Shown piece by piece: positions 19,716 to 35,500 of a stretch of DNA of 64,000 nucleotides. Positions within the stretch are counted from its first letter, which is position 1; the number at the start of each line of letters is the position of its first letter. Under the pieces are notes generated by a model. The model ran no database searches. It had not been told where the DNA came from and saw only the letters and a program-made list of their open reading frames with translations. The DNA is from Lytechinus pictus. Taxonomy: Eukaryota. The stretch spans positions 7,688,001 to 7,752,000 of the forward strand of contig NC_087248.1 of assembly GCF_037042905.1 (NCBI RefSeq). The letters run 5' to 3'. The translations under genes were made by a program, and so were the position numbers.

Positions 19716-22700
19716 CTACAGAATGCGTTGTGAAGTCAACATCTTGCTTTTCTAAAAATAAAACACGAGAAAAGAAAGAAAAATAAGAACTAGAAAGTAA
19801 AGATCTGATCAGTTCGTGTGTCATGTTCATAATGTTTCAACCCTTGATACGATTTTAAAATGGGTTGAAATTAATCAAAGTCCTTCATAGCCTTGACTTT
19901 GGATGGCTTTTAGAGTCTTATTGACGGGCTTCAAATGCCCTGATCACCAAGATTTACTTCTCATTATGAGAAGGACAATTCACTTGAAAAGGTACTAATT
20001 ATACCAACTCAAAATTAAACATTTACAAAGTTATTCTCTTCCAGAAAAAAAGAACTAAGTTTTTAAGGTTTGTGTTCATAAGGATCCATAATAGAACTAT
20101 CATAATTCTGATTATTAGTCTGTATTACATTCAGTTACCTCATACTCTTGATCTGATGTGATGATTCCTTCGATGCAGACAATCTGATATTGTTTGGCTT
20201 TCATTTGGTTCAAGGTCTTCCTCAATGGCTTCAGAGAATGACCAGTGATGTCACCTCTCCTGAAATTCAACGATACAATGAATTTAATTCCAGAGGAGCT
20301 CAATCCACTTCAGTATTTTCAGAGAGGAGAATAATCTGCTTGTATGTTTATTATTTGTTTTTGATGGGAAATATTTGAAATGAAAATTGCATCTTTTTTA
20401 AACCTAGTTCCAGTCACATTGACCTTAAAAATCACTAGCTTCAGGTTGTCTTTGTTACATTTTGTTTTCATAATATGAATCCATTTACCCCATAAACATC
20501 AAATTTTACTTAGAATTGGTGTCAGGTGACACTGAAAATCAATGAAAAAAAAATGTATCAACTGCAGGGAAATCATGAAAATGAAAAGTGATTAAGCGGT
20601 TAAATAAAAAATTGCTCAACTTCTCGAGTCATTACTCTTTCCTTTGTAAAGTGGTTCAGAATTTCCCAAATAATAGTTCCTTCCTTTTATAAATAAGGGA
20701 GGGGGAGAGGGTTGTACCTCTTTTATGTTAGAACCCACCTTTGGTGCTGGAAATTCTAAAAATATAAAATCATAACACTTTGCTGTGCTCCATCATTAAT
20801 AAAATCCTGAATCCACTCTTGTTACTGTTGAGAGTAATTCACATTGTCCATACCTGAGAGCATTGGCTTCGTTGACTCTAAGACTGGGATCAAAGAGCAG
20901 AATTCTAGTTGACTTGTCTTTCATCATGTCATAGCCAATGATAGTTCTGCTGTGTCCTGTTAAGGAGATATAAAGTAAAATCAATATCAGATATAATATC
21001 ATACAAAACTAGATGAATTGCTAACATTTATCTAAGAAATATCCCAATAATCATATGACAATATAGTACCTCGCACATTAAATAAATGTGTTTTGTGCAT
21101 CTTCACTCAAGACCAATGTGTCATGTGTGACTTGGACAACAAATTGAGGAAGCAGTTTTTACTCTGCAAGATTTCACCCTGATTTATTGCCATATTATGT
21201 ATGACCAAGAAAAAAAATAAAAGGAAAGAGAGAAGGGTGAAATACACTTTTTTTTAAATATTTGGTCAAAATCAATTACAAAATATGATTTTTGAAATAA
21301 AAATGTCTACAATTTTGCTCGCTTGGAACGTATTATTAATTTTGCTAAATACGCCATTCCTGTGACACAGTACGTCAACAAAACAAAGTGCCTTGCGCTT
21401 CTTCTCTCCAATAACAATGTGCGTGTCAAGTCTTATGAGCATTTGGTGGAACCAAGGAAGTAGTTGATCTGCAAGATTTGCAAATGACCTACCACCTGCC
21501 CAACCATAAAGAAGATTCCTTTATACCCCCTTCAAACATCGTTTGGAGGGGGTATCATGAATATACATACAAGGAAACCCATGGAGATAGTGGAAGAAGG
21601 GAAGGGGGTAGGAAACAAACATGACATATCATATTTCATTGATATCTTATATATTGTTTTGACACAAAGGTCAAGGTGTGCGGGTATGTGATTGTGAAAT
21701 AAACAATTTGTACAAAGGTCCTTCTCATAACACATTGATTACCTTCATGCTGGAAATAGAGTGGTAACTTGCTGGATCTCACAGAGTTCTCCATAGAGAG
21801 CAGAGGTGGTTTGCCAAAGTAATCCCTGATCCAGGCAAAGAGACGTGGATGGGTACCATTCTGACCACTGGGTGCATGGAAGTCAAACAGTTTGCATCTG
21901 TAAAGGTCAAAGAGGAATATAGAGGGAAGAATAATTCAAGCAACAAGAAGTCACAGCAAAGCATAGTATGCAGACATACGAGCAATTTTCTCAATGTGTT
22001 TGGGAAATAAAAACAACTCAAGAATAAGATTTTGAAATCAAAATGATCATGAATCTTATTTTGCTATGATTCACATGCACTTCACACAGAAATGTCCAAA
22101 TATCCAAATAATTCAGCTTCTTAAAATATTTGTTCGTATTTATCAGTGAACATATTTTCCATTATTACTTTTGAAAGCTATTTATTAATTATCTAATTAA
22201 ATAATTGATCAATCCATTCATTATATCAACCTTTTCTTTACTCATCTTCATCATTATTACTTATAATAACTATTTTGGAGGCAAGATATCCTATCTTTAA
22301 CATTTGGCATCAAAATATCAATCTTTTTTACATTGGACCTTTATTCCATGATCCTAGATGAAACATTCTTAAAAGCTCAGGACAACTGTGTACACATTTC
22401 CTACAAATCAATTTCCCTTAAAATATCTTCTGATTTCTTGATCGCACATTTCCATCATCAGCATAACAACAATAAGTCTACATAGAAAGACATCTCACTA
22501 CCACCTGACACTCTGCTGATAATAAATCACTAGACTCACCTGATCCGGAGAGCTGAGAACATGGCTACAACTTCCGTGGCACCGATCCACTTCCTGGTAT
22601 TATGGACTTTGCCATTCAGCTGGTCACGACCCTGGGCATCGAACCCTTTACTCCATGCATCCTCTATTAGAAGCTGAATTCTAGGAATAGAAGGAATTTC

Positions 22701-25700
22701 TTTTCTTCCTGCCAGGTGAAGATATTAAAAGATATGTGATTCATTAAGGGTATATTGGGTGTAAAGGAACATTAATAATAAGCTAATGATATTAGGCTCG
22801 GGTCTCCAGTTTTCCCATGATTTATACCACAGTCACATTTGCTCTACGGCGGCCGTACAGCGAGTCAATAACAGCCGTTTTATTTATTTCTATTCAAACC
22901 ACCTATATGTAGCTATTACAAAAAATGTTATAACAGCTGTTTTTGACTCGCCATATGGCTGCCATAGAGCGAATGTGACGGAGGCATAAGAAAACAGAAA
23001 TAATGTTTGAGCATGTTACCAAAGAACACTGAATTCGATGTTTAGTACACCAAGAAACACAAAATTTGCAATTTAAACAGAAACTAGGTTCCTTATATGA
23101 GGGGGGGGGGGAGGGAGCTGGAGCCCCCTACCCCATTTTATTTCAATAAACATGTACAAAAACATACACTGACCATCTGATTGTACTTTTTGCATGGCCA
23201 GCCCCTCTCCCCTTTAAAAACCATTCGGTTGGCCCCTATAACAAACAAGTGGAATGCCTCTGGCTGTCTCACCTGCATCACACGATTCAATATAGCAGCA
23301 GTGCTGACTTTGAAAACTACTATAAAATAATTATTCACAAAAAACACCATTCATATGATACAATACTACGTTCATTGACATTTGACCTTGATCATGTGAC
23401 TTAAAACTTGTCAGTGATACTTGATTACCCCTATATCCACATTTTATACACTATATCTATAAACTTTGAAAGTTATGACAGCAATCTAATAATTACCTCT
23501 AAAATGGCCAAAGTTCAATGACCTTAAATGACCTTTGACTTTGGTCACGTGACCTGAAACTCAGACGGGATGTTCAAAGATACTTGATTACTCTTATGTC
23601 CAAGTTTCATGAATCAGATCTATAAGCTTTCAAAGTTATGATGGTAATTCAAGATACCCCATTAAGGCCAAAGTTCATTGACCTTTGACCTCGGTCATGT
23701 GACCTGAAATGCGCATAGGATGTTCAGTGATACTTCATTACTCTTATGTCCAAGTTTTATGAACTAGACCAATAAACTTTCGAAGTTATGATGGTAATTC
23801 AACAAATACCCCCAATTTGGCCAAAGTTCATTGACCCTAAATGACCTTTGACCTTGGTCATGTGACGTGAACCTCTTGCAGGATGTTCAGTAATACTTGA
23901 TTAACCTTATGTCCAAGTTTCATGAACTAGGTTTATATATATATAAGTTGTGATGACATTTCAAAAACTTAACCTTAGGTTAAGATTTTGATGTTGATTC
24001 CCCCAACATGGTCTAAGTTCATTGACCCTAAATGACCTTTGACCTTGGTCATGTGACCTGAAACTCAGGCAGAATGTTCAGTAATACTTTATTAACCTTA
24101 TGGCCAAGTTTCATGAACTAGGTCCATATCCTTTCTAAGTTATGCTGTTATTTCAAAAACTTAACCTTCGGTTAAGATTTGGTGTTGACGCCGCCGCCGC
24201 CACTGTCGGAAAAGCGGTGCCTATAGTCTCACTCTGCTATGCAGGTGAGACAAAAAACCTATAAAAAAAGCCTGAAGTCTGAAAAATACTGCTCACCATT
24301 AAAGACAACCTGTTTGAATTGAGGATCTTCTACCAAAGCAGATAGCATCATCTGGATGTTGCGGTATCCACAGCCCCACCCAGAATCCCCCTTAGAGGAG
24401 GAGAAGTGATCTAGGTTGAGGGAGAGCCGTGCATAGGAGACACCATGCACCTTGTTGTTGTAGTAATCAAGCAGTCTAGGAATGATATCTGGCGAGTGTA
24501 ACATAAAGATTAATGCTTAATATTCACAATTGATTGATTTTTTTTTAAATTTTACTTTGGTGCCATGGACTTTCGGCTATGCTAAAAGCTAAACAGTGAG
24601 TGCATGTATAATATCATGTTAAAATCAAGGTTAATTTTCGCCATATCATGGTAGATTTAGATCCGGGGGCCGTTTCATAAAGCTGTTCGTAAGTTAAGAG
24701 AGACTTTAAGAACGACTGGTGAACCCATCTTAAGCGCTAAACCATCGCCAATTCGATGTACCATTTACCACAAGAAAGGATCACCAGTCGTTCTTAAAGT
24801 TGCTCTTAACTTACGAACAGCTTTATGAAACACCCACCTGGTACATTTACATAAACCTAACTTTGTGAAATCATGAAATCTAATCTGGAGAACCGTTAAG
24901 AAAAACTTAAGATCACCAAGTATGCCAACACAGATGTGGGACAGTGCATTATTACTGCTTGGAAGAAGACTGTACAGTGTTGCACCTAGCTAGAATGCCA
25001 TGCTTATTTTGCTCTACTCTCAGAAATTATACATTTTCTACAAGAATGATTGGACACAAAACACTCGGTCATTTTATTGGATTCCAGCACTAGTATTCAT
25101 GTTCAATTGGTACATGTACAATGTATATTGACTGTCAACTGTATCTTTCATGTAAATGGCTCCGATTGTTTCAACCAACACATGAAAATGCAAGTTTATG
25201 TTTCAATATACTTGCATGTATTTTTTTTCATGGTGCATAGTAATACATGAGGCCGCCATCAACTACAAGCTTAACCGCTCAAGATGGCGGTCTCCTGCGT
25301 TCATTTGTTTATGCTGCTTTTTATTATCATCCTAATGTGAAGTATATGCCCCAATCATTTTTTTCTATTTATGTAATGTGAAGTATATACCCAAACCATT
25401 TTTTTCTTCTAATTATTATGTTTATGTTGTAAACATTATGGATTGTTTTATATATTGCAAACAATGTAAATAATTTTTGATAATGTATTGTGAACGCAGA
25501 AATAAAATCAAACAAACAAACAAACAAACAAACATGCATTTATGCCCTGATGACATTTTGCAATGTACCCTAATGTACACCTGCAATCCTTCAAGCCGTC
25601 TCAATAGGAGTGGACGAGGAAAGTACTCTACACTTTCATCTCTTTTTATAAACACATCAAAGTCCCTTCTGTTTTCAATAGAGCAATGCAACTGCAATTG

Positions 25701-28003
25701 GCTTTTAACAATGTAATACTTTGAACACTAATTGAAGTACATCTTCAGTACATGGAGATCTGCCGGCATCATACCTTTTGTCCGAGATTGGCCAGAGTCG
25801 ATTCCCGTAGCCATCGCTTCTCTGATAGCTTGATTCTGCTGATGGTATTCTAATGGGGTTATTTCACCCCGCCACACTGCTTTGGAGGAGTTGCGCTCAC
25901 TCTGTCTCCTGAAATTCCCGCTTTCATCTGCCCCATACATGGCCTGTCAGTGAAATGTGAAAACTAATCTAATAATAATGATATTGATACNNNNNNNNNN
26001 NNNNNNNNNNNNNNNNNNNNNNNNNNNNNNNNNNNNNNNNNNNNNNNNNNNNNNNNNNNNNNNNNNNNNNNNNNNNNNNNNNNNNNNNNNNNNNNNNNNN
26101 NNNNNNNNNNNNNNNNNNNNNNTTAAAATACTACTACAAGAAGCATTTAAACTTGATCATCTGTATATGGGGCATAGGCCTTTGAGTATTACTGTAGCAT
26201 ACTTAAATATTTTCTCTCTGTAATTGCTTCTGGTGTAAAATATAAAACAAATATTTATATTTTGCTTTCAGGTGATGAGAATACAATCACTTTATCTGCA
26301 GTGTGAATGCACGCCAACTTTGATCAATTAGCACACAAGAACAAAACATACAAAAACTTGAAGTACCGTACCTTTAACTTCTTAAATTCCTCTTCCTCTT
26401 TCCTTTTCTGTTCTCGCCGCTCATCCTCAGCCAGTTGTTCAGCAAGTTTCCTATCTACATCTGTCATATCATTCTGTCCTCTGCGACTGCTGCCAGCATC
26501 AGCCGCTCCAGTTGATGGTCCCTCTGCAAAGTGGCTTTCAACATGTGCATTCATTTCCTCAGTGACTAGCCCAACTAACCCACAGACGGGGCAAGTGATA
26601 TCTCCTCCTCCAATGGCTCCCCCTTCAGATGGTCTATTCTCGGCGCTCCTTACCCCTATAGCACCTTCGGGATGTTCCGTGTTGACATGGCTATTCAGGA
26701 AATCAGCATCATAGCTGCCAAGTCCACATATTGGACAGAGGATTGGTGATTGCACATTCTTTGAAGCTTTGCTTAGGCTGAGGAGAGTTGGTTTATCAGG
26801 GTTCGGGGTCTTGACTTTCACACCTTCTGTTGGTTTTGATTTTGCTTTTGTCGGTGTAGAGGTGGAGTTCGGGTTGGCCACACTGCTAGTGCTTGGGATA
26901 TCTTCCCACTGGATCTCTTCTGCTGGTTGGGCATCTTCGATGAACATGAGCTCATCATCATCAAGGAGATCAGGTTCAGAGTCATTGGTGAGATCAACCC
27001 ATATCCCACTCTGTTCCTTCTTGTCCTCAGCCTCTGCTTCAGCTGTCCTTCCTGTGAGCGTTCTGAAGAGCTTACGGAATGGACTGCTGGTCTCACTGGC
27101 AACACTCTCATTCCCACTCCTGGATGACGCCAGCGTATCCAGAGATTGGTGGCTGTTCCGTCGCTCTGCAGATTCCAGGCGATGTGACTGACGGGTCTCT
27201 TTGGGTCTCACATCCGGTTCCTTTCTACCTCGTTTACGGTCATTTGGCTTTGGTTCGCCTTGCTTTTGTTCATCCTGCTTTGGGCCAATCTGTTTTTGGT
27301 CATTCTTTCTACTGGTATGTTCTGAAGGTGCCCCATTCCCTGGCCCCGTTCTGCCTGCCTGCCGTCTTACAATGTTTCTCTCTTTGAAACTCTCCTTTGA
27401 TTCATCAATAATGCAACACTCAGCATCTGACTCTCTTGGGCCATTCTCATGGCCACTTTGGTCTTGGCTTGAAGATACTGATGACTCAGAAAACAAATCC
27501 TGTGAAATGCCATCCTCATCCATCGATTGTCTCAAATTACTTTCTTGCTCCCTAATATCTATATTTTGATTCACATCCCTTTCTATTTTTAGGGCAATTT
27601 CAGCATCATCTATATGATCCACATGAATATCATTCATTTGCTGATCAACAGACTCTCCATTCTGTTTGGTATCAGTTGGTTTTGCAAAGTAGTCCTCAAT
27701 ATAAATCAAAGAATTTTCCTCATGAACTTCTTCTGCTATCAACACAGCATCATCTCCATTGTCTTGCACGCAACTTCCTTGCCTGTATTCGCTGGTGCTA
27801 GACTTTGCCGCATGGGCTGGACTGAGTACATGACGATGTGCTGTATTCATGTGGTATGATAGTTCTTCAATTGTCACATGGGCAAGGTCACACAGAGGAC
27901 AAGACCCTGAGTTTTCCTCGTGATCCAGAAGCATATGAGTTCTGACCTCTGCTTCGTCAACAAACCCTTCCTGGCCACATATCTCACATGTCTCAGAAGA
28001 CAT
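19716..28003 (-). CDS. ZUP1: Zinc finger-containing ubiquitin peptidase 1 (ZUFSP/ZUP1, C78-like peptidase), 8 coding exons, ~858 aa
   Basis: Exons (minus): 28003-26372, 25943-25775, 24488-24297, 22708-22540, 21897-21743, 20956-20854, 20259-20139, 19751-19716 (2577 nt, phases consistent). Four Zn fingers (CEIC, CPLC, CPIC, CPVC..HVESHF) and MIU DRKLAEQLAEDERRE. Catalytic motifs GWGCGYRNIQM (Cys), QHEGHSRTIIG (His), LLFDP (Asp), plus WIGATEV. An N gap lies inside the first coding intron. Confidence 0.93.
23244..24256 (+). mobile_element. HINE-like family A, copy 3, in a ZUP1 intron
   Basis: Same ends and monomers as 2579-4043, with ~5 monomers; ends ~40 bp from the ZUP1 donor at 24297. Confidence 0.8.
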
Positions 28004-29444
28004 TCTTGAAGAACCGGTATCCACAGTGGTCACATTTCACTATCAATCTCGTTCTCTGCAAAGACAAAAGGAGAGATATATTAATTAGCAACTCTTCAAA
28101 TTGCAATAGGCCAAAGAAAATAATTTTACCATTGAAATGCATAATGGTTTATTTATCCCATTATCAAGCAATTCCACTGCAAGTACATCTTGAAATTCAA
28201 TTAATATCCACTAACAACAAGATCTATACTGACTTGAAAGGTAATTTCCTGGTCCTTCTACAATGTATGACTTATCATTATATACAACGTGGAATTTGCT
28301 TGTGGGGGGGGGGGCACTTACATTGACGAGTGGATACCATGCGCAACCCAAAAAACATGTAAAAAGAATGTCTTTTTCAAGATAGGGCACGTTACGTACG
28401 TAACGAAATAAGGGAATAAAAAACACTGAAATAATGAAAAAAGGGTATCTATTGTGCTAGGAAAGCTACGTGTTAAGGGTCAAATTTGCGAGGGTATAAA
28501 AAAAAAAGTTTTATAAAGGATGTACTTTTTGCCTCAACAGTCAACACTACGTGTTTAGAGTACGATTTGCGCGAGGTGTGGGAAGTGGGGCCGTACTAAA
28601 CCCAATGATGTAGGTAAAGGAAAACCGACGACCAACGTCCTTGAAATAATTAAAATATCGCTGTAGGCCTACTTGTTTAGGGGTTAAATTCAAGGAATAC
28701 TTGCCAAGACTAAGAGTATCGTTTTGTTTCCAATACTTGTTTAAGGGAAGGGTTTCACACACCAATACTTGTTAAGGGATGCATTTTCAGAATATGGAAA
28801 ATACTTGCTTAGGGTGCTTTTTGAGACCCCATGATTGCGCATGGTAACCACTCGTCAATGGAAGTGGCCCCTCCGGAGTCCCGGTATCTGGCATGATTTT
28901 GATTATGTCACTTGTCTTAAATAAGTACTTTTAGACATACTTTTACCCGCTTTACCTCTAAATCTAGTTAATCTACCCAAAATTCTAAGTGTAAGTTAGG
29001 TTCTTATTTCGATTAACTTAATTCTTATTCTGACATGTCTGATATTGATAAATGCCAAAAGAGAAAATGTGCCAACAAGTTCAATTCATTGAAGTTATTT
29101 GGTTGATATAACTTTCTTAGACCTACCGTACTTGTACTGTCTTGTCACGTTTCATATAAAACAAGTTTAACTCCAACGGCAATTGAGTAGATCTTGGACT
29201 AGATTGGTGAGTTCTGAGACTAAACATGACGAGTGTGTCAAGCAAAGTTCAACTTCAAAAAAACGACTGCTGGCATCTAGTTAGTATAGTCACGTATTGT
29301 ATTACCGGACACTATCATGATTCCGGACGCGCATATTACTGCGTTCGAAAAACAATTTCGTACCGAAAGACTTCCGCAATTCAATTTCACAGAGCAATAC
29401 ATAGAACAAGATTGCAAAAACAAGGCGAAAAATACAACTTTTAC

Positions 29445-30571: not shown

Positions 30572-31430
30572 GCATCGATAGAACTTGATGAGCATCACGA
30601 TACGAATGAGCATAATATTGGAAAGTGCCATGGAACTTGCAGTTAAAAGAAAAAAAATAGTAAGCAATTTACACAAATTTATTACCATCTGCTCAGATTC
30701 GATAAAAAAGGCAAACAAAAACTTTGTGCATGAGACTCACGCATCCAGGGTCCGTCTCACGATCTCACGCATGGCACCCATTTTTCTCACGCAACGGGAC
30801 CCGACAGAAAAAAAGAGAAAAAGTAGCATTATTCGCTAGATTATACGCACTGGCCGACCGCCTTCGCGTCTACCCCGGCACACGAGACGAATCGAGAGTG
30901 CAGTCAGCGCACAGCTAGTATGTGATACGAGGAATCGTGTGCGTACATCGCATGGTTTTGTAGTATGATTAAATAAGTATGGATCGATATCATGATGAAG
31001 CCCACATCTCGCGCGCGCGCCTTTTACAAACGTACAAGTGTAAGAACTGGCCACGCGCATGCAGAGATGCCGAGTCATGAAAATCTCACGCATAACATTT
31101 TTTTAAACTTGGATCTCTGTATAAGTAGAAAAATTCACACAAATTTTTTCTTAGTTCTTACATCATTATTTATAAATATCAACTAATCAAGAATATCCTT
31201 ACCCGTCCGGCGCGCGCGCGCGTCCGGAATCATGATATAAAGGCATAATCGTGATATAGTCCCCAAATCCAAAAGTGGGGATTATTAGAATCACACCTAC
31301 CAGAACGCATGAAAATCACTTCCTTTCTCCAGAACACAGTCCCCAACTCTCGCACAACTCTGTGGCAAAATGATAACACACACAAATGAAACACACACTG
31401 TATATAAACACTAGGGTTCTCTCCCTATTA

Positions 31431-31735
31431 TATACTCGTGATCCAGTCCCCACTCAATGGGAAATCCAGTTTGATTTTCACGGCGGTGGGGACAGTTCCA
31501 ACAGTATATATACTCGTGATCCAGTCCCCACTCAATGGGAAATCCAGTTTGATTTTCACGGCGGTGGGGACAGTTCCAACAGTATAGTATACTCGTGATC
31601 CAGTCCCCACTCAATGGGAAATCCAGTTTGATTTTCACGGCGGTGGGGATAGCTCCAACAGTATTCATACTCGTGATACCGTCCCCTCACAACATAAAAT
31701 CGTGCTCGTTCAACAAGGGGATGGGGACAGTTTCC
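31431..31735 (+). repeat. Tandem array of 78-79-bp units in the left arm (3 near-identical + 1 diverged), mirrored at ~32725-33030
   Basis: TATACTCGTGATCCAGTCCCCAC...GTGGGGACAGTTCCAACAG starts at 31431, 31509 and 31588; a diverged unit starts at 31666. Confidence 0.95.
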
Positions 31736-31894
31736 TGATGCATTGTGACAAGGATAAAACATTTTAGGGTATGGCTGCGGAAGCTGATGAGGGAGGGGGG
31801 GGGGGGGGGACTTCAGCCCCTACCTTTTTCCAAAACATTGTGAATCCTTCTGAACTAAAATCCTATAAAAATGCCTTCATATATAGCATAAAAG

Positions 31895-32570
31895 TGCAGT
31901 CTTTTTTCCAGACCCGGTTAATTAAAAATTGTAATATAAGTTAAAAGTCTTTTTTTCCAGACCCGGTTAATTAAAAATTATAATATAAGTCCAAAGTCTT
32001 TTTTTCCAGACCCGGTTGTTTCAAAAATTATCATATAAGTCCAAACTAAGATACCATAATGATATTCTAGTGGAATAAAAATTAAAAATCGAGTTTAGTC
32101 TTTTCTCCAAACCCTGTTATTCCAAAATTATAAATAATAATACAACAACAACAACAACAACGTTATTCTACATCAATAATATTAGGGGGGCCTTGGTTAA
32201 TTAATGTTGTTTGTTTGTTTTTATTGTTTCTCGTGATTTCCTATTTTGAAATAACTGGAGCAAAGACTACACCATATTTCCGTGCTATTCAATGTTGATA
32301 AGATTGCAGGGTTTTTGTTTTGTTGTGTTTTTAACAATTTTTATAACTGGGTCTGGAGGAAAGACTACACTATATTTCCATGTTATTTAACAATAATAAG
32401 AGATTGGGGATCTTTATTACTTTTTTACTCTTTGAGAAATGATTTGTAAAAGTGGGTCTGGAAAAAGACTTTGAACTTATATTATAATTTTAACAACCGG
32501 GTCTGGAAAAAAAGACTTTGAACTTATATTACAATTTTTAATTAACCGGGTCTGGAAAAAAGACTTTGCA
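31895..32570. repeat. Inner ~48-bp tandem arrays of the foldback element (AAAGTCTTTTTTCCAGACCCGGTT...), inverted on the two sides, with degenerate copies in the loop
   Basis: Three copies at ~31898-32045, three inverted copies at ~32450-32570, and decayed copies near 32097, 32255 and 32347. Confidence 0.85.
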
Positions 32571-35500
32571 CTTTTATGTTATGTGAATGCATATATAGGA
32601 TTTTAGTTCAGAAGGATTCACAATGTTTTGGAAAAAGGTAGGGGCTGAAGTCCCCCCCCCCCCCCCCCTCCCTCAGCTTCCGCAGCCATACCCTAAGATG
32701 TTTTATCCTTGTCACAATGCATCGGGAAACTGTCCCCATCCCATTGTTGAACGGGCACGATTTTATGTTGTGAGGGGACGGTATCACGAGTATAAATACT
32801 GTTGGAGCTATCCCCACCGCCGTGAAAATCAAACTGGATTTCCCATTGAGTGGGGACTGGATCACGAGTATACTATACTGTTGGAACTGTCCCCACCGCC
32901 GTGAAAATCAAACTGGATTTCCCATTGAGTGGGGACTGGATCACGAGTATATATACTGTTGGAACTGTCCCCACCGCCGTGAAAATCAAACTGGATTTCC
33001 CATTGAGTGGGGACTGGATCACGAGTATATAATAGGGAGAGAACCCTAGTGTTTATATACAGTGTGTGTTTCATTTGTGTGTGTTATCATTTTGCCACAG
33101 AGTTGTGCGAGAGTTGGGGACTGTGTTCTGGAGAAAGGAAGTGATTTTCATGCGTTCTGGTAGGTGTGATTCTAATATTAATCCCCACTTTTGGATTTGG
33201 GGACTATATCACGATTATGCCGATATAAATTTGTCGCGTACGAAAATAATTGTTTTTCATGGAGGGGTATGCGGCAAGTGCGATGCAAAGAAAACGGTTG
33301 GTAAACATAAAATAATTTTATCATATTCTGTTATTTGAAAAAGTGCGAATTTGTCTTGATCGTATTTCCTCTATTTGTCCGGCAATAGGATCCACTGCCA
33401 TACTACCGGTACATGAAAATACATGAGTGGGACAACACAATGTAAGTAACGAAGTTGAACATTAGCGTTAAAAAGGCTGATAAGTGCAAAACGACAAGGA
33501 AATACATTAAGATGAGCTTAGAATGATATGCGCCTAGAATTTTTAATCGGTCCATGGTACTTACTTGATCAGCCCGGGGTACACTACAGAGTACAGGTAC
33601 GAGCAAGACGGGCGGAACAACAGTAGGCCATAGAGTCTTCTTAGAGATGTATTCTCTATGCAGTAGGCCTACCAAAATACGTGTAGACTGCAGCTTGTTC
33701 TCTGACATGCGCCGTGGCGCCGGGGAGGCCGGGCGGCCTAAGGCCTAGCGCATAGCCGCGCCGGTTCCCTCGTACCTCAGCAAAATCCATTTTCCAAGCG
33801 AGTCAGCTTACTTATAGTACCGGGTAACTTATTTAGAATAAATCACAAAATGAAAAGGGGCTGCACAGGGGCGGATCCAGCTTTTTATAAAGGGGGGGGT
33901 TGGGGTGGTATGCGAGGGAGCGTAGCGACCGAGTCCAAGCGAGCGGAGCGAGCGAGGGGGGAGGGTGTGGGAGGGGGGTGTCCCCCTCCCACAGTAGGGA
34001 AAAATTTTGAAAATCTGTGTGTGAAAATGGCGTTTTCTTGCATTACAAGTTAAAAAAAAAAGATAAGATTTAAAAAAATGGTCCCCGGATTTTTTTTTTT
34101 GGGGGGGGTTGCAACCCCCCCAACCCCCCCTCTAGATCCGCTTCTGGGGCATTATGGCGGGGGGCCTATTTAATTTAATAGCAATTATTGTTTTATTAGG
34201 TGCATGGTCTGTCCGAGATCATATATCATTACCATCATCTTCATTGTTCATCATCATAAATATTACCATCATCATTATCCTTATATCATTTTCATCATCA
34301 TTATCATCACCATGCGTCGTCATTATCACCACCATGCACCACCACCATCATCATCATCATCACCATCGTATAGTCATTATCATAAAGGGCCTTGATATCA
34401 CCATCATTATTGCCATGGTCAACATTTATTCTCATAGATAGATCATCCGAAGTTACTTTTGCAAATAATTCATTTCATATTACGTTGCTCAATATTGAAA
34501 ACTGGGACGTCATAGGGGCACTTGCTCTCTAGATTTCGACACATTGTACCATTGTAGCGCCATCCTTGCATGTGCCTTAATTGCTTTTATTCATATCAAT
34601 AGAAATTTAGTGATGGAAATTATAGTTTTTGTAGGCACAATGATTTCCTTTGCCTACGAAATGTTTGATTAATTGCCCGCGTGAGCAGGGATGGAGCTGT
34701 GATGGTTTGATATGGGAGGGGGGGGGGGTGATACAGCCTTTAATGATGTCATACTTCAAATGAATATACATAGCAATTGAAAAAAAAACATGCTTAATTA
34801 TACACACTGCGGAACAAAACATGACAAATTTTATCTTAAAGATTCTGAACAGCATTTCAAATGATTTGTCATCCTATTTAGTTTTTTCTTTAATCTGTTT
34901 ATTGATTGATCTTTACATATTTTTTTATTTTATAATAAAACGATTTCAAGACAAAGTGAAATACAATAACAGCAATGAAATAAGAGAAAGCTGGTGAACA
35001 TTGCTTGTATGTATAGTGAAAAGATACAATAAAAAATTGCAATATATGATTTACTTAACATTCATATAAATTTCTAAGTCATGTTAATGGGTCTTTCCGA
35101 GAACACATCATTTTGGATATTGATAATTACTATTGTCATCATATAGAATACTATATACAAAAAAATAAAATATGTCACATCTTTGTTATTTCTTGTTGAA
35201 TTTCGATAATATTTCAGTGTTTTGTTTATCTGATTTGACTCTGTGAAAATGATATTACTCTCAGCCTGGAATACACATTGAAGAATGATAAAATTCATCA
35301 TGAAAGCTAAACTTGAATCTAATATCATTTGACTCTTGAAAAAAAAATCCTATGTAAATATGTATATATTTTGAAATAATAAATCCTCAAGGAAGAGGCA
35401 AAGAGATAGAAAAAATATGAAATTCAATCTTAGGCTTATGTTTTTTTTATCAATCGTGTATCATGGAAATAATATTATCGGATCACATTTCAAAATAACT

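Follow-up and report, generated by a model that had tools for sequence, protein, structure and literature searches.

A palindrome of 1980 bp at positions 31242–33221 of a 64,000-nt stretch of the Lytechinus pictus genome (assembly GCF_037042905.1, contig NC_087248.1, forward-strand positions 7,688,001–7,752,000; hereafter the window) is probably a non-autonomous, foldback-shaped Merlin transposon, mobilised in trans by an IS1595-like DDE transposase. The Merlin superfamily comprises the eukaryotic relatives of bacterial IS1016/IS1595. The element is non-coding and present in the genome in about 50 copies, which form a young, mobile and non-autonomous family. It belongs to a known type; the length of its arms and the reiteration of its end motif are noteworthy for Merlin and are familiar from the foldback elements of other superfamilies.

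The borders of the element were read directly. It starts with GGCATA and ends with TATGCC, and it is flanked by two exactly matching 8-bp copies of GATATAAA, located at 31234–31241 on the left and at 33222–33229 on the right, each abutting the element end. The left terminus (31242–31264, plus strand) is a 23-nt end with a GG start, and the right terminus (33199–33221, minus strand) is the same end inverted, with CC at the plus-strand end. The 23-nt end occurred exactly twice in the window, once per strand, and had 0 occurrences in 100 shuffles. Between the termini, a left arm of ~0.8 kb (31242–32045, plus strand) is mirrored by a right arm (32454–33221, minus strand).

Genomic family and target-site duplications

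The genome searched comprised 812 Mb in 368 contigs. The 29-nt terminus was found at 102 genomic places with at most 3 mismatches, 77 of them exact, and the reversed control gave 0. A degenerate pattern, in which GG, the TCGTGA core, and AGTCCCC were fixed, matched 92 places. As all 92 carried the same end, the family has no halo of diverged relatives. The terminal GG was kept in 100 of the 102 termini, with one GA and one TG as exceptions. The termini formed ~40 inward-facing pairs at different sites, spanning 217 kb together, with a modal length of 1.9–2.4 kb; 24 pairs measured 0.9–2.8 kb and the remainder up to 25 kb. The two-armed design was common to most copies.

Among the 24 short pairs, 17 had exact 8-bp duplications, as did four of eight long pairs. 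Duplications of 9 bp were observed in three pairs (L059, L060, and L031), duplications with one mismatch in 3 more, and none in 6. The 21 clean 8-bp targets were all different and 71% A+T, with a weak trend from A-rich to T-rich. The original prediction, made from the letters of the window, had proposed counting the copies and tabulating their duplications, and the resulting 102 termini and ~40 pairs showed that 8-bp duplications predominate.

Seven copies were 98.4–99.4% identical (substitutions) to the element at 31242–33221, and the other subfamilies were 82–91% identical to it. One subfamily (L034, L037, L040, and L041) combined the same 29-nt ends with arms of another sequence, at least 1.5 kb long, and its members were 91–98% alike internally. 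The sister copies of the element occupied different sites with their own target duplications, in agreement with the original prediction of a young family.

A separate observation was made at L083 (C20:13624579–13629121). This copy had two left termini 977 bp apart, each after the same 12-bp flank, and a single right terminus, with the 8-bp duplication CAATATTG. It is a local duplication that took in the element end and its flank.

Probable assignment to the Merlin superfamily

Three features define Merlin (PMC8101967, summarising Feschotte 2004): 5'-GG at the termini, target duplications of 8 or 9 bp, and a transposase of the DDE_Tnp_IS1595 type. The family has 5'-GG at the ends of its inverted repeats (GGCATA...TATGCC), with exact duplications of 8 bp (21 pairs) or 9 bp (3 pairs). 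Transposase genes were searched by six-frame profile search of the whole genome, and all 60 candidates for PF12762 (the Merlin DDE domain) were scored. This search gave 53 genomic matches, of which 2 lay within long terminus pairs compared with 0.014 expected (P(≥2) ~1e-4). The first match, C8:41705484–41705930, covered positions 1–151 of the 153 in PF12762 (E = 1e-21) in an open frame of 345 aa and was enclosed by the terminus pair 41694007(+)..41711340(−). The second, C3:81037424–81037723, covered positions 54–150 (E = 4.5e-12) in a 252-aa frame and was enclosed by the pair 81030428(+)..81049142(−). In matched genome-wide controls, none of the 17 matches to the Mutator-like element (MULE) domain PF10551 and none of the 62 matches to the hAT domain PF05699 fell inside family pairs. 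The GG ends, the 8/9-bp duplications, and this distribution of transposase matches sustain the preference of the original prediction for Merlin over MuDR. That prediction had also called for a transposase-bearing partner. The two DDE matches inside long pairs are candidates for such a partner, and from coordinates only we infer that they are the family's own transposase.

Several observations weigh against this assignment. Terminal inverted repeats (TIRs) of Merlin elements are described as 24–462 bp long (PMC8101967), and the arms of the element extend over ~770–800 bp at an identity of at least 95%; the quoted range describes Merlin and does not define it. The two DDE-bearing pairs, of 17.3 and 18.7 kb on C8 and C3 respectively, are large for Merlin, and the inner-arm 32-mer of the present subfamily was absent from both. 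The two ends of the C8 pair are of different variants. The partial footprint of the C3 match was common to matches on C7 and C5 with no family terminus nearby. On these grounds, the DDE genes on C8 and C3 may belong to unrelated Merlin elements that inserted into family copies. In other long copies, the extra length is due solely to nested retroelements. Finally, a unit-level conservation profile of the 78-bp repeats described below had to be set aside as biased, because the units were chosen by the end motif itself.

The nested retroelements were recognised when 13 long terminus pairs (L031–L043, whole or in part) were considered as autonomous partners. These pairs were rejected, as their large open reading frames (ORFs) belonged to retroelements and included no transposase. 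L033 (4496–8442) and L037 (1715–6914) contained nested long interspersed nuclear elements with endonuclease, reverse transcriptase, and RNase H domains. A nested gag-protease of a long terminal repeat (LTR) element was located in L036 (3986–6477), and L034 (268–8022) contained a nested LTR-like repeat of 7.7 kb, which is present at least 20 times in the genome.

Further Merlin sequences were seen elsewhere in the genome. Two full Merlin DDE matches with 461-aa frames, C3:5966636–5967082(−) and C3:5969801–5970247(+), lie 3 kb apart in opposite orientation, and no family terminus was found near this pair (C3:5966636–5970247). Tight clusters of 4–6 Merlin DDE fragments each, on one strand and with many stops, were located at C15:11801614–11804793, C8:6236070–6244577, C9:1836597–1856654, and C10:9357334–9370870. 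These clusters look like tandemly amplified Merlin-derived sequence.

The strongest of the alternatives, which we consider unlikely, is a Foldback/Mutator-type (MULE-related) non-autonomous element served by a MuDR/FB-type transposase, the Merlin genes in the long copies being nested passengers. The classical Foldback design is one of long inverted arms composed of tandem repeats in which the end recurs, and the element has such tandem-repeat long arms with a non-coding middle. A G start is also frequent among MULE ends, and three pairs carried 9-bp duplications. However, Foldback elements and most MULEs make duplications of 9 bp or longer (FB 9 bp; most MULEs 9–11 bp), and here exact 8-bp duplications were found in 21 pairs and 9-bp duplications in only 3. 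The long members likewise contained no MULE transposase detectable with PF10551: none of its 17 matches was inside the 40 pairs, compared with 2 for Merlin, with the reservation that PF10551 may miss FB-type transposases.

Origin from another superfamily with 8-bp duplications, such as hAT or P (the P-type Galileo elements also have long foldback arms), or from one not yet described, appears improbable. The duplication length fits, since 8 bp is typical of hAT and P as well. However, hAT ends are of the YARNG type and P ends of the CATG type, and GGCATA is neither. The nTnnnnAn pattern was absent from the 21 target sites, and none of the 62 matches to the hAT dimerisation domain (PF05699) was located in the pairs; P-type domains were not included in the search.

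Assembly and library artefacts are known to yield long palindromes that are nearly perfect. However, an artefact, or a local inverted duplication that is not a mobile unit, is in practice refuted here: ~40 pairs at different loci have the same two-armed design, each with its own target duplication. This alternative also disagrees with the arm mismatches and indels and the asymmetric centre of the element.

Structure of the element

Each arm of the putative Merlin element consists, from the terminus inwards, of a terminal unique part, a 78-bp array, an inner domain, and a 49-bp array. The left 78-bp array (31429–31741, plus strand) has three good units and a degenerate fourth, with a 17-mer starting at 31436, 31514, 31593, and 31671. 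Its mirrored counterpart (32722–33031, minus strand) has the 17-mer at 32773, 32851, 32930, and 33008. Tandem Repeats Finder detected 3.3 copies of the 78-bp unit at 31429–31686, mirrored at 32774–33031. The same program found 3.0 copies of an AT-rich 49-bp unit at 31898–32045 (plus strand) and, mirroring it, 2.6 copies of a 48-bp unit at 32454–32577 (minus strand). The inner domain of the left arm contains a G15 run (31795–31809), and the right arm has a C17 run at 32652–32668. The centre of ~400 bp (32046–32453) includes degenerate 49-bp-like units in both orientations and a (CAA)6 run near 32143–32161. As the centre is asymmetric, copies of the element have an orientation.

The inverted-repeat scan detected an arm pair of 526 nt with 98% complementarity, plus adjoining pairs, and the mirror-covered portion of the left half was 804 bp. 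In a global alignment of the element with its own reverse complement, the outer ~420 bp were 100% identical, followed by 95–97% identity up to ~600 bp and 82–98% up to ~780 bp, and the central ~400 bp were weakly mirrored (58–80%). The longest ORFs overlapping the element encoded 93 aa (32623–32904, internal) and 90 aa (33066–33338, extending beyond the right end). The 93-aa ORF gave no Pfam match, and no Rfam match was found across 30900–32300.

Among the element parts that were folded, significant folding (z = −3.1) was limited to the terminal 59 nt. Each 78-bp unit has an 8-bp stem (GTCCCCAC/GTGGGGAC) with a 35-nt interior, and its fold was no better than that of shuffles (z = −1.2 to −1.6). 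The 49-bp units formed no hairpin compared with shuffles (z = +0.7 to +0.9).

These results bear out most of the structural claims of the original prediction. The perfect 8-bp duplication and the GG...CC termini stand as read at the borders. The reverse-complementary ~0.8-kb arms with two mirrored arrays were recovered in agreement by the inverted-repeat scan, the self-alignment, and Tandem Repeats Finder. The ORF, Pfam, and Rfam results match the claimed lack of coding capacity. The claim that the sequence is palindromic at two scales holds for the whole element and was overstated for the 78-bp units, given their short stem and ordinary fold.

Reiterated end motif and concerted evolution of the arms

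The 17-mer of the 78-bp arrays corresponds to positions 8–24 of the element end. It recurs once per 78-bp unit, resulting in five copies per arm. Ten copies per element were counted compared with 0.02 in shuffles, and their orientation was always that of the nearest end. When the end and the four units were aligned, they had three blocks in common, ATA-TCGTGAT, GTCCCC, and TGGGGA. All 24 copies examined had the motif, spaced at ~78 bp, even those of subfamilies with an overall identity of only ~83%. Its number per arm varied from 0 (one arm of L049) through mostly 2–4 to a maximum of 6, and the arms of one element often had unequal numbers.

The terminal 23 nt were almost invariant among the ~100 genomic termini, even among subfamilies with arms ~83% identical. 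A near-invariant terminus amid diverged arms is the pattern expected from selection for transposase recognition. The reiterated 17-bp motifs are candidate additional transposase-binding sites.

The two arms were compared in 13 young copies, with 2000 random pairings as a permutation test. In the terminal 190 bp, the arms within one element differed by 0.5% and those between elements by 1.7%. In the inner domain, the corresponding values were 2.2% and 4.2%. For both parts, 0 of 2000 permutations reached the observed value. Variants of the terminal part carried by exactly two arms were, in 7 of 7 cases, on both arms of a single element. Because any mutation starts out on a single arm, some copying from arm to arm must have taken place, whether within these copies or within the elements that gave rise to them. 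Such copying may be how the arms stay alike.

Genomic context

A gene lies on the minus strand to the left of the element. A 569-aa open frame at 26324–28033 contains C2H2 zinc fingers, and two further frames, at 24262–24516 and 21639–21935, match Peptidase_C78. A PDB search of the neighbouring ORF gave generic zinc fingers only. Judged by this ZUP1/ZUFSP architecture, the gene at 21639–28033 is predicted to be ZUP1-like. As the architecture reads on the minus strand, the element is on the 5' side of this gene, at a distance of 3.2 kb from its zinc-finger exon. The C2H2 exon and the Peptidase_C78 exons are consistent with the original prediction that the element lies upstream of a putative ZUP1, whose proposed first exon would be 1.6 kb away.

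Two other features were observed in the left flank. A dispersed repeat of ~180 bp at 30942–31120 had at least 363 candidate copies with 78–92% identity and is probably a short interspersed element or a miniature inverted-repeat transposable element. It was considered as a paralogous empty site and rejected, as it ends 120 bp short of the insertion. The sequence next to the insertion is unique, which leaves no paralogous empty site. At 31204–31229, ~5 bp from the target duplication, a (CG)6 tract lies between two copies of GTCCGG, a possible Z-DNA or hairpin-prone spot at the insertion site.

Proposed mechanism and significance

A Merlin transposase encoded elsewhere in the genome would excise the element and paste it in trans. 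The likeliest source of this enzyme would be the rare long family members with a DDE_Tnp_IS1595 gene. As recognition sites, the transposase would use the near-invariant 23-bp end and probably also the 17-bp end motifs that the 78-bp units bear, five per arm and all in the same orientation. Insertion would involve a staggered cut of 8 bp, occasionally 9 bp, in AT-rich DNA. The two arms evolve in concert.

With the element, the little-studied Merlin superfamily gains a non-autonomous family that is well documented and apparently recent. The arms of its element are about twice as long as the longest TIRs quoted for Merlin, and the reiterated motifs provide a candidate set of transposase-binding sites that is directly testable. 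For annotation, the 2-kb palindrome upstream of the ZUP1-like gene is explained as mobile DNA and not as a regulatory structure. An unstable, hairpin-prone insertion near a promoter could affect the ZUP1-like gene; nothing in the analysis shows such an effect.

A bolder reading, which we regard as tentative and less probable than the plain Merlin assignment, is that Merlin contains a true 'Foldback' lineage, represented by this family: its transposase would act on subterminal reiterated ends, and copying between the arms would keep them alike. If so, the foldback design would have arisen independently in Merlin, as in Mutator and P. The sea-urchin TU elements, unclassified since 1983, might then belong to Merlin too.

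Comparison with known systems

The element shares with Merlin the terminal 5'-GG and the 8/9-bp duplications without a strict consensus, and DDE_Tnp_IS1595 genes, putatively the family's own, lie inside two long members. Internal tandem repeats, found here in both arms, also occur in several Merlin families (PMC8101967). It differs in its arms of ~0.8 kb compared with TIRs of 24–462 bp (PMC8101967), and in being almost wholly palindromic and non-coding. A further difference is the reiteration of the end motif in the 78-bp array, and the link to a specific transposase gene is here one of coordinates.

The FB elements of Drosophila have 9-bp duplications and are tied to a MuDR-type transposase. 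The Tetris elements of D. virilis have duplications of 8–10 bp (PMC4079207). With both of these Foldback elements, the present family shares inverted arms with flanking, tandem-repeat, and inner domains, a variable non-coding middle, mostly non-autonomous members, and repeat counts that differ from copy to copy and from arm to arm. It differs from them in its mainly 8-bp duplication and in that the search found only a Merlin-type transposase domain associated with it.

The TU elements of Strongylocentrotus purpuratus are foldback transposons said to have tandem repeats in long inverted repeats and 8-bp duplications. In this design, they resemble the present element, which is likewise a sea-urchin foldback with tandem-repeat inverted arms and an 8-bp duplication. 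They were reportedly described by Liebermann et al. in 1983 (cited in PMC4079207).

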